Positions 3,343-63,335 of a DNA stretch of 64,000 bases are shown here, piece after piece. Location: positions 62,001 to 126,000 of the IMG/VR virus record IMGVR_UViG_3300017917_001342. One strand, given 5' to 3'. The notes under the pieces are model-generated. The model worked only from the letters and a program-made list of their open reading frames with translations, had not been told where the DNA came from and did not search any database. Positions within the stretch are counted from its first letter, which is position 1. Each line of letters begins with the position of its first letter. A program made the position numbers and the translations under genes.

Positions 3343-3948
3343 ATGCGTATAAACGAGTTAACACCTTATCGCAGAGATCCAAACTACAAAAAGGCTCAGG
3401 AAATATTTGCAGATCCTGAAACTGGATTACCACCTAGACGCAAATCCAAGCTTGCAAAACTAACTGCATGGTTAGATTCGCATGGCTTTAAAGTAGTAGG
3501 ACAAGGTTCGTTCGGTGCTGTATATGAAAAGCCTGGTTACCCTTGGGTATTCAAAGTATTCAACAAAGATCCTGCATACATGCATTTCCTACGTTATGCA
3601 ATGGCACATCAAGGCAACCCACATTTGCCTAAGATACGCGGTGTGATGAAAATAGACAACAACACCTATGTTGTACGTATGGAAAATCTCAAAGAAATAC
3701 CATTGGGATCAGAACCAGCTACTAAGCTGGTAAAGATACTACACAATATGGACAGCTACGGCGACATAGACGAAAAAGATGTAGACTGGATTAAGAAAAC
3801 ACTGCCTGGTATACACAACTTCTTTATGACATTTCCGCTAGGTGGTTACGAATACGATATTCACTATCAGAATCTCATGATGCGCGGCAATACCATAGTA
3901 ATAGTTGATCCACTGTATGATTGGCACGGAATGGAAGGCGACGAATGA
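3343..3948 (+). CDS. Ser/Thr protein kinase, T7 gp0.7-like (copy 1)
   Basis: Glycine loop GQGSFGAVY, VFKV lysine, catalytic DIHYQN, IVDP. Confidence 0.8.
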   Translation: MRINELTPYRRDPNYKKAQEIFADPETGLPPRRKSKLAKLTAWLDSHGFKVVGQGSFGAVYEKPGYPWVFKVFNKDPAYMHFLRYAMAHQGNPHLPKIRGVMKIDNNTYVVRMENLKEIPLGSEPATKLVKILHNMDSYGDIDEKDVDWIKKTLPGIHNFFMTFPLGGYEYDIHYQNLMMRGNTIVIVDPLYDWHGMEGDE

Positions 3949-4580
3949 AACTCAACGACTTATTTGAACGCCATTACCGTACTGTGCCTGCATATCAAAC
4001 TGCTAAGGCTGCGTTTGAACCTGTGACTGATCCAGAGTTAACACCAAATAAACGTAGGCAAGCAGGTGACGCTGCGTTAGCAAAATTCAACAACTACATG
4101 GACGAAAACGGTTTTGAAAAACTAGGGCAAGGTGCATTTGGTGCTGTATATGAAAAGCCTGGTTATCCTTGGGTATTTAAATTGTTTGCCAATGATGCAG
4201 CGTATCTTGCATGGATTAACTACGTTGCCACTCACCAAAACAATGAGCATGTTCCTAAACTCAAAGGCAAACCTTTTAGAATAACTGACGGTGTATTTGC
4301 AGTGCGTATGGAAAAATTGAGTCGCATGCCCGACACTTGGTGGGATGACCCGCTGTTAGATATGACAGTATATGGTGGTATAACCGCAGAGAATAGAAGA
4401 AAATTAAAAGAACTAGGGCATGAAGATCTAGCCGATGTACTAAGTGCAATTCATCAGTTGGCTCACGGTAATCCTAACAATGACTGGAACACTGACATGC
4501 ACGGTGGTAATATACTGATGCGCGGTGATATACCTGTTATTACAGATCCCCTAGTTGATCGCACTACCTTTGGAAAATAG
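3945..4580 (+). CDS. Ser/Thr protein kinase, T7 gp0.7-like (copy 2)
   Basis: GQGAFGAVY, VFKL, DMHGGNIL, VITDP; start reassigned to MKLNDL (ATGA overlap). Confidence 0.82.
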   Translation: MKLNDLFERHYRTVPAYQTAKAAFEPVTDPELTPNKRRQAGDAALAKFNNYMDENGFEKLGQGAFGAVYEKPGYPWVFKLFANDAAYLAWINYVATHQNNEHVPKLKGKPFRITDGVFAVRMEKLSRMPDTWWDDPLLDMTVYGGITAENRRKLKELGHEDLADVLSAIHQLAHGNPNNDWNTDMHGGNILMRGDIPVITDPLVDRTTFGK

Positions 4581-4589
4581 GCATAGACT

Positions 4590-5291
4590 ATGATACTGGA
4601 AGAGTTATTTTTTGTAGAAAATTACATATTAGATGAGATAACTCACTACAGAAACCTACCTGCATATCAAGCAGCTAAAGACGCATTTACTGGTGTAGGT
4701 CGTACTGGTCATTACGATGCTATGAAAAAGTTCAAGCAGTTTATGCAAGACAACGATTTCAAACGTCTAGGAGGCGGTGCATTTGGTGAAGTCTATGAAA
4801 AGGAAGGCTATCCCTGGGTATTCAAAGTATTTCACGGTGATCCTGCATACTTGGATTTTATACGTTATGCAATTGCACATCAAAGCAATCCACATGTACC
4901 AAAAGTCAAAGGACAGCCGTTTCGTATAGATGATAAAACCTATGCTATACGTATAGAAAAGCTACAGCCGTGGAGTGATTATTTCGACGTTAAAAGTGAA
5001 AACGGCACAACACTAATGGATTTTCTGCGTTGGTGGAACCCGCCATTGAAACAGGAACAAATAGAATTTTTGAAACAACGCAATGTCGAAGGATTAGTAG
5101 AAGTGCTTAACGGGCTCGCAGCACTGTGTCGTAGTAAAAATTACAGATTAGATCTACACTACGGTAATGTCATGCGACGAGGCAATACACCAGTTATTGC
5201 AGATCCTCTGGTTGATGACAAGAGTATGGAAAAAAGCAAGCCGCCGATGACTATGCCTGCAAGACCTGGCCGTGCTACTAGATCTGGATAA
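4590..5291 (+). CDS. Ser/Thr protein kinase, T7 gp0.7-like (copy 3)
   Basis: GGGAFGEVY, VFKV, DLHYGNVM, VIADP. Confidence 0.82.
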   Translation: MILEELFFVENYILDEITHYRNLPAYQAAKDAFTGVGRTGHYDAMKKFKQFMQDNDFKRLGGGAFGEVYEKEGYPWVFKVFHGDPAYLDFIRYAIAHQSNPHVPKVKGQPFRIDDKTYAIRIEKLQPWSDYFDVKSENGTTLMDFLRWWNPPLKQEQIEFLKQRNVEGLVEVLNGLAALCRSKNYRLDLHYGNVMRRGNTPVIADPLVDDKSMEKSKPPMTMPARPGRATRSG

Positions 5292-10908: not shown

Positions 10909-11411
10909 ATAGTAACTGATTGTGTTAAAGCAAAATTCAATGCTTTTTTATGATTGTCTATTAGTACTTCACATTTTCCGGAACCAATTGGCAATATTTC
11001 CCAACCATTGCCCATGTATGCATTAACTTGTTCGTCGAGTTCTATTTCTCGGCCTACATTTTTCTTTAACCATTTGATTGAATTAATGAGGTCGCTTGAA
11101 TTGATCACTATTCGTTTAGCATTGCTCCATTTTTTCTTAAATTTTGTGTAGTCTAGTTCTTTAAGAAAAATAAAGCTGAATATCTCATAAAAACAATATT
11201 CTTTTTCTGTAGAATCAGTGTCACTGGATTTAGAGATCTCATCTTCCCAAAGTAAAAAGCATTTGTCAGCTTTAAGCTTTTTTGTAATATAATCTCTATG
11301 ATTTTTATATCGTTTATAATGTTTTTTGTTAGGCCACTCTTTGTTGTATTCAGCAACAGCATTTTCAATATATTTTTGAATTAATTCCGGGTGTGCATAA
11401 AAATTGCTCAT
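10905..11411 (-). CDS. Hypothetical protein (same family)
   Basis: WLKKNVG...ALNFAL; ATGA overlap with the DNA ligase gene. Confidence 0.65.
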   Translation of the reverse strand: MSNFYAHPELIQKYIENAVAEYNKEWPNKKHYKRYKNHRDYITKKLKADKCFLLWEDEISKSSDTDSTEKEYCFYEIFSFIFLKELDYTKFKKKWSNAKRIVINSSDLINSIKWLKKNVGREIELDEQVNAYMGNGWEILPIGSGKCEVLIDNHKKALNFALTQSVTI

Positions 11412-56578: not shown

Positions 56579-57550
56579 ATGCGTTACTATGAGATTGCAA
56601 CAACTGAAAGTTTTCAAGAGTTAGATGAAGACTTAAAAAGCAAACTAGCAAAGTTAGCTAAACTAGGGGCCGCTGCCGGTACAGCAGCAACTCTTGGCTA
56701 TGGTGCAGGTGTTGCCACAAACCAACCCAGAGTAATACAGCAAACTCCTGCAAGTATAATGCGTGACATGCCTGCTGGACCAGATGAACCTGCTGGCTAC
56801 ACTGTAGACAAAAAAGACACTGCATTGTCAACTTCGCTTAGACCTAAACCACGACCTGCAGATTTGTCAGCACCTGCTGGCAAAGGTACAGCAGCAAAGC
56901 CAGCAGATAACAAAGTTAACGTTCTTACACCTGGTCCGGATACCGTTCGTCCACAGCCAAGACCTTGGACCAAAGATATGATGACGGTTGATCCAAAACT
57001 ACAAGCCGCTGCCGATGCTGCAAATGCACCTAACATGGTAGATAATGTAAGCGACAATGTCGAAGTTGAAAACATGCTAAGAGACGCAGCCAAAAAAGCA
57101 GGTATGACGGACGTTGAAATACGTGCATTTTTAGCACAGGCAAATCACGAAAGCCATAATTTCAACAGTACTAAAGAATATGGCACTAAACGCTACTTTA
57201 GACACAACTATGATATCAGGCACAATCCGCGAGTAGCTAAACTATTAGGGAACACCGAACCAGGTGATGGTGTAAAATATCACGGCCGCGGATACCTACA
57301 GATCACAGGTCGTTACAACTATGCGGCTGCTGGAGAAGCACTGGGATTACCTCTGTTAGATCAACCAGAACTGCTAGAAGATCCAAAAATAGCAGCCGAA
57401 GCATCTGTATGGTTCTGGATGTGGAGAGTTCATCAAAATGTACGTAACATGTATGATGTTAAAGAAGTAACCTACATGATAAACAAAGAGTTAACCGATC
57501 TTGAGAAGCGCGAAGAACTGTTTGACCTTTACAAAAATCTCAAAGTTTGA
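56579..57550 (+). CDS. Glycoside hydrolase family 19 (lysozyme/chitinase-like), probably virion-associated
   Basis: FLAQANHES, LGNT.PGDG..YHGRGYLQITGRYNY; late promoter upstream. Confidence 0.85.
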   Translation: MRYYEIATTESFQELDEDLKSKLAKLAKLGAAAGTAATLGYGAGVATNQPRVIQQTPASIMRDMPAGPDEPAGYTVDKKDTALSTSLRPKPRPADLSAPAGKGTAAKPADNKVNVLTPGPDTVRPQPRPWTKDMMTVDPKLQAAADAANAPNMVDNVSDNVEVENMLRDAAKKAGMTDVEIRAFLAQANHESHNFNSTKEYGTKRYFRHNYDIRHNPRVAKLLGNTEPGDGVKYHGRGYLQITGRYNYAAAGEALGLPLLDQPELLEDPKIAAEASVWFWMWRVHQNVRNMYDVKEVTYMINKELTDLEKREELFDLYKNLKV

Positions 57551-57597: not shown

Positions 57598-57674
57598 GGG
57601 GGGTTAGCTCAATTGGTTAGAGCGTCGGACTCATAATCCGCAGGTTATCGGTTCGAGTCCGGTACCCCCTACCA
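57598..57674 (+). tRNA. tRNA with CAT anticodon (probably Ile2, otherwise elongator Met)
   Basis: Full cloverleaf, CTCATAA loop, TTCGA, CCA end. Confidence 0.88.
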
Positions 57675-57679
57675 AAACT

Positions 57680-57754
57680 GCGTATGTGGTCCAGACAGAT
57701 GGGCACAGGATTCTAAACCCTAGGAGGCAGGCGCAATACCTGTCATGCGCACCA
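57680..57754 (+). tRNA. Amber-suppressor-type tRNA (anticodon CTA), atypical
   Basis: Acceptor GCGTATG/CATGCGC-A-CCA; D stem GTCC/GGGC; loop TT-CTA-AA at canonical spacing; T stem GCAGG/CCTGT. The anticodon stem has only 3 of 5 pairs. Confidence 0.65.
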
Positions 57755-57787
57755 TAAATAAAACAGTGTTTAAGGAGATATAACACC

Positions 57788-58420
57788 ATGTCGTAGATTG
57801 AAATTGCCTGTAACGATTTAGTATTCCACTTTAATAAAAAACACTTAGAAGATCCCACTATTCCTATGTGGGTTGTCAAGGCCAAAGGCGAAACCTATTA
57901 CGTTCATCATGTCACTAGCGACATGCCTTGGTCTACTAAAGAAACTCCAAACAACGCCAGTACCAAAGGCAGCATCAAATTTAAAAAGTGTCATCTTATC
58001 ATTGATGACAACAACGAAGCTACAATTAAGCCGTTGACTATGCTTAATGCAATGCGCCTCAAAAAAACCGAGCCTAAGAAGATTCGGTTGATTATGGACT
58101 ATCGTAAGCACATAGACGAATTTATCGAATATTGCGACGAACAAAATATTCAACACGACGGTGTACATATACTTCCTGGCAGTTGCGGTTCTAGATACTA
58201 TGCAACAGAAATCAAAGAAGATGATCTATTGCTGTTGCGTATGTGGTTCCCACCGAAGATGTTTAGAGAATTGATGCCTAACGAGTATCTCTACAGCTAC
58301 TACGATAAGCATGCTGCGGGTGTTGAACCACCAGACTACGACGATGATGACTACGAAGATGATCTCGATGACGATACAGACGAAACGGTCACATCATACG
58401 AAGATCTCTATGAAAACTAA
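57788..58420 (+). CDS. Hypothetical protein with an in-frame TAG at codon 3 (MS*IEIACNDLVFHFNKKHLEDPTIPMWVVK...)
   Basis: TAAGGAG RBS at 57771-57777, ATG 57788, TAG 57794-57796; same frame as ORF 57866-58420. Confidence 0.7.
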
Positions 58421-61646: not shown

Positions 61647-61726
61647 GGGGTCGTAGCTTAACACGACAAAAGCGGGGCGCTTGCGGCCCGAGATACGGGT
61701 ATGCGTTAGTCCCGTCGATTCCACCA
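61647..61726 (+). tRNA. Atypical tRNA-like gene with Ala identity (G3:U70, A73)
   Basis: GGGGTCG/CGATTCC-A-CCA; non-canonical anticodon loop GCTTGCG; 11-nt T loop. Confidence 0.5.
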
Positions 61727-62309: not shown

Positions 62310-62314
62310 TTAAT

Positions 62315-62398
62315 GGGTCGTACCCCGCAAGGTGCGGGAGCGGACTGTAACTCCGTCGGGGAAACCCACGCTTGGTTCGATTCCAAGACGACCCACCA
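62315..62398 (+). tRNA. tRNA-Tyr(GTA)
   Basis: Cloverleaf with variable arm; CT-GTA-AC loop; CCA end. Confidence 0.92.
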
Positions 62399-63177: not shown

Positions 63178-63335
63178 GCCTGCGATGGCGAAATTGGAGA
63201 GACGCACCGGCAGGTGAGGCCGGCGGGCTCTAAGGAGTAGCAGTGAGCGAATGGGAGTAGGTCCGGAACGAAACCGCTAGCAATAGAATGCGAAAGTTAC
63301 CCCACATGTAGGTTCAAATCCTACTCGCAGCACCA
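63178..63335 (+). ncRNA. tRNA-like RNA (158 nt) with ~80-nt expanded variable region and CCA end
   Basis: Leu-like D arm; CCGGC-AGGTGAG-GCCGG arm; GTAGG-TTCAAAT-CCTAC; CTGCGA/TCGCAG acceptor. Confidence 0.6.

Follow-up and report, generated by a model that had tools for sequence, protein, structure and literature searches.

A conserved amber codon beside a suppressor-type tRNA gene forms a candidate translational gate in a giant freshwater phage and its relatives

Phage suppressor tRNAs are known mainly from genomes that have reassigned a stop codon wholesale, and tRNAs with a CUA anticodon are the hallmark of phages in which TAG has been recoded (bioRxiv 10.1101/2021.08.26.457843; PMC13037316). 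In the crAss-like, Lak, Jade and Agate phages of the gut, such a tRNA permits in-frame TAG codons in phage genes to be translated within a host that uses the standard code, and the proposed purpose of these ‘code-change modules’ is regulatory, in that expression of certain genes is delayed (Borges et al., bioRxiv 10.1101/2021.08.26.457843; Ivanova et al. 2014). Other systems also place a stop codon where it can serve as a control point. The gene for release factor 2, prfB, carries an early in-frame UGA that senses termination efficiency and thereby sets the level of the protein. The pyrrolysine system encodes a tRNA-Pyl(CUA) near methylamine methyltransferase genes that contain a conserved in-frame UAG. 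Two-codon minigenes of the lambda bar type consist of a Shine-Dalgarno (SD) site, ATG, one codon and a stop. Finally, synthetic ‘leak dampener’ circuits in Escherichia coli drive a suppressor tRNA together with a target that carries an amber codon near its start, which yields AND-gate logic with low leak (PMC7969014; see also PMC13276491). However, what suppressor tRNAs do in phages that retain the standard code has been unclear.

Here we describe a locus in a giant freshwater phage in which a tRNA gene of the amber suppressor type resides next to a gene whose third codon is TAG. The locus lies on the plus strand of a 64,000-nucleotide stretch of DNA (hereafter ‘the window’), which is a piece of a 518,643-bp IMG/VR contig. 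A prior sequence-only reading had proposed that this gene is translated only when the adjacent phage suppressor tRNA is made and charged, forming either a local switch or an early stage of recoding. All the sequence elements on which that proposal rests are present, although its coordinates are shifted by one base. The core inference of a local gate is strongly supported by the comparative data presented below, whereas suppression itself is inferred rather than shown. Each of the grounds for rejection on which the proposal could be tested fails: independent assemblies show TAG, homologues do not start at the internal MWVVK methionine, and the tRNA family exhibits compensatory changes. Two parts of the proposal fared less well. 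An early stage of recoding is unlikely because the arrangement is stable across lineages whose proteins are only 40-50% identical, and an ATAAATA late promoter could not be supported because no such motif is conserved in 60 aligned contexts.

The tRNA-like gene occupies positions 57680-57754, ends in an encoded ACCA with A as the discriminator, and carries CTA at canonical positions 34-36 within the seven-nucleotide loop TTCTAAA, such that the anticodon is flanked by U33 and a purine at position 37. Detection of this gene is mixed. ARAGORN finds 11 tRNAs in the window but does not call this one, whereas the Rfam tRNA model (RF00005) matches it over model positions 1-71 of 71 with a score of 32.6 bits against a gathering score of 29 (E 6e-4), and a covariance model that we built from 43 related CTA tRNAs scores it at 48.7 bits. 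Its minimum-free-energy fold is no more stable than that of shuffled sequence (z = -0.9). The RNA lacks the canonical elbow, because its D-loop (AGACAGAT) has no GG and its T-loop reads CGCAATA (A18, C54 and G55), and its anticodon stem comprises only 3 bp. Immediately upstream, at 57598-57674, is a tRNA-Met gene (anticodon CAT) that is called by ARAGORN and by Rfam (68.6 bits) and that is probably in the same transcription unit. A contig from an RNA-seq library spans 57603-58019 (tRNA-Met, the CUA tRNA and the start of the gene), but this is weak evidence for co-transcription because DNA carry-over is possible. A scan for promoters and terminators revealed nothing convincing between the tRNA and the gene, and a weak TTGACA-17-TAAGTT upstream of tRNA-Met was seen by eye only.

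Downstream of the tRNA, an SD site (AAGGAG, 57772-57777) is located 10 nt before a two-codon leader, ATG TCG (57788-57793), which is followed by TAG (57794-57796), ATT at 57797, and an open frame that extends to the stop codon TAA at 58418-58420. The next in-frame ATG is at 57866 and is not preceded by an SD site. This is the only place in the window where an SD site, ATG, at most 5 codons and a stop are followed by an ORF of at least 60 codons, and thus the arrangement is beyond chance. Moreover, the TAG is not an assembly error, because contigs from independent freshwater metagenome studies carry it unchanged. A 16.5-kb contig from one such run has 4 differences over the stretch, all elsewhere, and another contig covers 57616-57876 with a single difference, at 57862. 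A Logan contig from a different sample (L084), whose encoded protein is 90% identical, likewise reads ATG TCG TAG, and the viral locus L005 also has TAG at this place.

The 23 codons between the TAG and the next ATG are coding. A megablast search against GenBank phages gave no hit for the region, but tblastn searches with the post-TAG translation identified Rhizobium, Sinorhizobium and Agrobacterium phages that align from residues 4-7, and 80 related viral loci align from residue 1 or 2. The invariant residues F10, H11, F12, N13, K14, H16, L17 and P23 all lie upstream of M24. In addition, AlphaFold yields a confident model (pLDDT 86.6 for the whole protein and 93.8 for the N-terminal domain) in which residues 2-12 (or 2-13) are placed in the first core beta-strand with pLDDT above 90. 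Most loci have no ATG, GTG or TTG between the TAG and the V-F-H-F motif.

The TAG is also conserved as such. In 75 of the 80 loci the frame reads ATG, 1-4 codons (9 in one locus, and most commonly a single Ser or Ala codon) and TAG, which lies 9-11 codons before the invariant FHFNK motif. None of the loci has TAA, TGA or a sense codon at this place, and the 5 exceptions begin with ATG at or next to the following codon. These loci represent 59 distinct nucleotide contexts plus that of a cultured phage described below. Given that the proteins are only 40-50% identical, a neutral codon could not have survived unchanged. On a maximum-likelihood tree, 59 of 62 rows of the main clade keep the TAG, and the losses are one basal clade plus three scattered rows, although more distant members of the protein family often lack it. 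A strong, A/G-rich SD site at the same distance precedes the ATG in all 60 contexts, and the TAG is always followed by a purine (A in 54 and G in 6), a context that probably favours amber suppression (Bossi; Miller and Albertini). In contrast, the terminal stop of the gene is TAA or TGA in 60 of 63 distinct homologues.

The tRNA travels with the gene. ARAGORN finds a CTA-anticodon tRNA on the same strand in 56 of the 80 loci, where it lies upstream in all but one, from 25 nt to about 2 kb away and within 400 nt in about half. In 40 of these loci it is the only tRNA that ARAGORN finds in the +/-2.5 kb flanks. The covariance model adds 15 loci, including the window and L005, to give at least 71 of 80, whereas eight or nine loci show no CTA tRNA within 2.5 kb; one further locus beyond the 71 has almost no upstream sequence. 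Among the 43 distinct tRNAs, whose anticodon loops read CTCTAAA or TTCTAAA, 17 of 19 cloverleaf pairs exhibit compensatory changes, and these are found in all four stems. The G1-C72 pair is formed in all 43, anticodon stems are weak or mixed, and an SD-spaced ATG always precedes the TAG, and therefore these RNAs do not resemble initiator tRNAs that might read UAG as a start. The acceptor end (G1-C72, C2-G71, mostly G3-C70, and A73), together with the nearest paralogue in the cultured phage, a 78-nt tRNA(taa) with the same T-arm, hints at a Leu-like origin. The glutamine in ‘MSQ’ N-termini of database homologues cannot be taken as evidence of the inserted amino acid, because it is a gene-caller reading of TAG.

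The same pair occurs in a cultured T4-like phage of Rhizobium phaseoli, RHph_I1_18 (MN988519, 171 kb). In this genome, ATG AGT GAG TTC ATG TAG is followed by the 76-residue N-terminal domain, and about 11 nt after the stop codon is a canonical tRNA(cta) that is annotated as ‘tRNA-Pyl’. The protein-coding gene is unannotated in GenBank. A scan of the whole genome for an SD site, start, short leader, stop and ORF revealed no excess for TAG over TAA or TGA, and our gene is the only such hit in an unannotated gap.

The protein, here called X, is 209 residues in length when the Met-Ser leader and the residue at the UAG are counted. It is predicted to comprise an N-terminal beta domain (57797-58033, residues 1-79 after the TAG), a C-terminal alpha/beta, ferredoxin-like domain (58034-58312, pLDDT about 90-97), and an acidic, predicted-disordered tail (58313-58420, including the stop codon) with low pLDDT at residues 184-193. 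All 63 distinct homologues end in a D/E-rich tail. No family for X was found in Pfam, PHROGs, NCBIfam or PADLOC, and a search of the ESM Atlas returned only low-score unnamed viral clusters. Foldseek searches with the whole model gave nothing below E 0.035 against the PDB, with only weak similarity to generic ferredoxin-like folds of the ACT, S10 and S6 types for the C-terminal domain, and a single uncharacterised phage homologue in BFVD. The N-terminal domain alone has no PDB fold match (E>1). However, its centre, at about residues 25-51 (W25..G31xxYYxxH38..W45..P51), appears WW-like: a profile of X hits WW domains among PDB sequences only at E 0.2-0.7, whereas the N-domain profile hits genuine WW-repeat proteins at E 4e-10 to 2e-4 summed over 6-8 repeats. 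About 1,200 clusters at 90% identity exist, all hypothetical, and gene callers systematically truncate, skip or mistranslate members of this family. The 149 clusters at 50% identity fall into three architectures, namely the N-domain plus C-domain (about 190 aa, as here), the N-domain alone (about 85 aa, as in RHph_I1_18), and a roughly 100-aa helical extension plus the N-domain (as in Atu_ph07 and Phosso). There is no conserved third gene, as the commonest neighbour, which encodes a zinc-ribbon protein, occurs in 25 of 80 loci. A link to lysis is likewise not conserved, because the endolysin gene just upstream in the window recurs only in the closest relative, L005.

The most economical explanation for these observations, which we favour with moderate confidence, is a self-contained, amber-gated expression cassette. 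Ribosomes would start at the SD-led ATG, add one residue and meet UAG at codon 3. If host release factor 1 (RF1) wins, only a dipeptide is made, whereas if the charged phage tRNA wins, full-length X is made. Because the tRNA and the message come from the same locus, and probably from the same transcript, output would depend on transcription twice. Such an AND gate or coherent feed-forward loop would suppress leaky or premature synthesis and tie the level of X to the balance between suppressor and RF1 in the infected cell. That this tRNA is charged and decodes this UAG is an inference, as is the regulatory purpose. Some observations do not sit easily with this model. Certain members that lack the TAG keep the tRNA (loci L011, L052, L059, L064 and L088), so the tRNA may have other clients or roles. 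Also, TAG is still a stop for roughly a tenth of phage genes, and an efficient suppressor would read those through.

Among the alternatives, the possibility that best survives, although it is unlikely, is that the gate is real across the family but that the cassette is decaying in this particular phage, such that X is silent or is made only by rare near-cognate readthrough. The degenerate D- and T-loops of the window’s tRNA, its rejection by ARAGORN, and an Rfam score only 3.6 bits above threshold are consistent with this view. However, the tRNA is a diverged member of a subgroup (L031, L005, L043, L067 and L084) that shares the weak anticodon stem with 27:43 and 31:39 mismatches. Locus L031 has a canonical TTCGATA T-loop and a D-loop GG, as is true of these features in most relatives, and the acceptor stems of the window, L005 and L031 differ by compensatory changes. 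Furthermore, the phage represented by L084 keeps the odd CGCAATA loop with a single D-loop difference, even though its X is only 90% identical and its neighbouring tRNA-Met has diverged more. The changes at positions 18 and 55 appear to affect the partners of one tertiary pair, and X retains an intact frame, the TAG and the conserved residues. These findings argue for a constrained, unusual tRNA rather than a dead one, but do not prove activity.

Ordinary reassignment of TAG across the genome (code 15), with X as just one of many affected genes, is similarly doubtful. The presence of a CTA tRNA and the translation of this TAG as Q by some gene callers are compatible with reassignment, and only 64 kb of the 518-kb genome was examined. 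Nevertheless, TAG ends about 11-13% of crude ORFs (8 of 71 non-overlapping ORFs in the window and 58 of 428 in the pooled loci), and no other gated gene or convincing TAG-split gene is evident within the window. The complete RHph_I1_18 genome, in which TAG ends 21 of 236 crude ORFs, is densely annotated in the standard code with X as the one unannotated gap. Under reassignment TAG would interchange with synonymous sense codons, yet here it is fixed at one site and is absent from the rest of the gene.

Less likely still is a leader minigene without readthrough, wherein X is translated by re-initiation at a non-canonical codon just after the TAG or from the ATG at 57866. The leader does resemble a minigene with a strong SD site, the codon after the TAG is ATT or ATC in 47 of 60 contexts and these can serve as weak starts, and genes for Pth2-type peptidyl-tRNA hydrolases recur near X. 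However, the remaining 13 contexts have the non-start codons GTA, ACT, AAC, AAA or GTT after the TAG, and initiation at 57866 would delete a conserved core strand. This model also does not explain why the stop is always TAG, nor why a CTA tRNA is co-located so often. Finally, although a single in-frame stop near the start of an ORF is the usual signature of a sequencing error or a dying gene, both are refuted by the independent assemblies and the conservation of the TAG, and the protein is under obvious purifying selection.

A more speculative possibility, which we consider unlikely but which is not excluded, is that X is itself a factor of the termination or suppression pathway, for example an antagonist of host RF1 or a ribosome- or peptidyl-tRNA-associated factor. 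The UAG at its third codon would then close a feedback loop that sets how strongly UAG is read through in the infected cell, as a suppressor-tRNA counterpart of prfB autoregulation carried as a mobile two-gene cassette in standard-code phages. Several neighbourhoods point to translation. X stays linked to the CTA tRNA even where the TAG is gone (L011, L052, L064 and L088), and genes for ribosomal protein S21 and ClpS flank X in L088. A compact RF1-like gene with its own conserved in-frame TGA, at codon 36, lies upstream of X in the tRNA-less loci L086 and L087. A Pth2-type gene lies two genes upstream of X in Phosso, and Atu_ph07 has the same gene layout with a 333-bp gene at that position that is annotated only as hypothetical. 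In L011, a weak Pth2-like gene (Pfam PTH2 E 1e-3, below the curated cut-off) carries an ATG AAA TAG leader and is followed by an un-gated X.

Literature searches found no description of this cassette, and its nearest known relatives differ from it in specific ways. In the recoded gut phages, many late genes carry many TAGs at variable positions, TAG is lost as a terminator, and the insertion is Gln. Here one gene carries one TAG at a fixed site beside the tRNA, TAG is retained as a terminator, no aminoacyl-tRNA synthetase or release-factor gene lies in the flanks of TAG-bearing loci, and the pair persists across lineages as far apart as a 518-kb freshwater phage and a cultured 171-kb rhizobiophage. 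The cassette may represent the stable single-gene state from which wider recoding could start. With prfB, escape from the stop occurs by +1 frameshifting and the product is the factor that reads the stop, whereas here escape would be in frame, by a dedicated tRNA. Although ARAGORN and GenBank label these phage tRNAs ‘tRNA-Pyl’, the label rests on the anticodon only. The tRNAs have standard class I shapes, mostly with standard D- and T-loops, 7-8-nt D-loops and 4-8-nt variable regions, rather than the short D-loop, 3-nt variable loop and 6-bp anticodon stem of tRNA-Pyl, and no PylS or PylBCD genes were seen among the conserved neighbours in the +/-2.5 kb flanks. In lambda bar-type minigenes an unsuppressed stop likewise yields a dipeptidyl-tRNA or dipeptide, but here the stop is followed in frame by a conserved 200-residue protein and is paired with a cognate suppressor tRNA. 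The leak-dampening circuits built by synthetic biologists are engineered and are known to work, and the arrangement described here would be a natural, evolutionarily conserved counterpart, in which a compact genetic part consists of a leader plus a tRNA.

Examination of the loci in which the gene for protein X lacks its amber codon revealed additional arrangements that touch on translation. In locus L011, one of the related viral loci, X carries no TAG, whereas the gene just upstream (L011:2125-2496) begins ATG AAA TAG ATA GAC and encodes a weak Pth2-like protein (PF01981, E 1e-3, below the curated cut-off). The CTA tRNA in this locus is located 1.5 kb upstream. The gate appears to sit on the first gene of a two-gene unit. 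In two other related loci, L086 and L087, compact (about 229 aa) class-I release-factor homologues (L086:2502-3191 and L087:3326-4015) reside 1-2.4 kb upstream of TAG-less X genes. These homologues carry a PxT-type tripeptide (PPT) and the GGQ motif, and each has a conserved in-frame TGA at codon 36 (GGC TGA), a position that probably aligns with a Trp of E. coli RF1. Either these are phages in which TGA is read as Trp or this is an opal-gated RF1. No tRNA lies within 10 kb.

Copies of the X leader also were encountered at the start of other genes. In related loci L068 (1829-2494) and L054 (1576-2253, which is the same as L057:840-1517), NUMOD3/GIY-YIG-like homing-endonuclease genes are inserted between the tRNA and X, and these genes start with ATG GCA TAG ATT GAA TAT in L068 and with ATG TCG TAA ATT GAA in L054. 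This finding suggests that homing endonucleases target this site and duplicate the leader. The TAA version could not be read by a CUA tRNA.

The family of X is one that gene callers systematically truncate, skip or mistranslate. The homologue in Rhizobium phage RHph_I1_18 (L001:1477-1725, corresponding to about 10,997-11,245 on the complement of MN988519.1) is left unannotated in GenBank, whereas the adjacent tRNA is labelled ‘tRNA-Pyl(cta)’. Furthermore, in the large protein collection, many homologues are either truncated at the internal Met or start with ‘MSQ...’ because a gene caller read TAG as Gln.

Within the window, a GH19-type endolysin gene (56579-57550; Pfam Glyco_hydro_19, PHROG endolysin) whose product has a long Ala/Pro-rich N-terminal part is located immediately upstream of the tRNA pair. 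However, this adjacency is kept only in the closest relative, L005. At window positions 4578-4589, two same-frame ORFs on the + strand (3921-4580 and 4590-5291) are separated by TAG-NNN-TAG. A tandem amber terminator of this type would be expected to limit readthrough in a phage that carries an amber suppressor.

The tRNA array of the window includes two further weak tRNA-like hits that are not called by ARAGORN. The first (61647-61723) scores 26.3 bits with the Rfam tRNA model, which is below the gathering score, and the second (63240-63335) scores 24.4 bits with R1, the covariance model built from related CTA tRNAs. These may be more divergent or degenerate tRNAs. In addition, the tRNA-Tyr(gta) called by ARAGORN at 62314-62398 scores best in Rfam as tRNA-Sec (39.5 bits, below the gathering score of 47), probably because of its long variable arm.

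The CTA tRNA of the window (57680-57754) belongs to a subgroup that also includes representatives from the related loci L005 (2384-2458), L043 (2334-2408), L067 (2380-2454) and L031 (2238-2312). Members of this subgroup share a 3-4-bp anticodon stem with mismatches at 27:43 and usually 31:39, and they have varied nucleotides (T, C or A) at T-loop position 54. The window and L084, a contig from another sample, alone also change positions 18 (G to A) and 55 (T to G), which are partners of one tertiary pair. Notably, 4-bp anticodon stems have recently been linked to stop-codon reading (PMC13092985).
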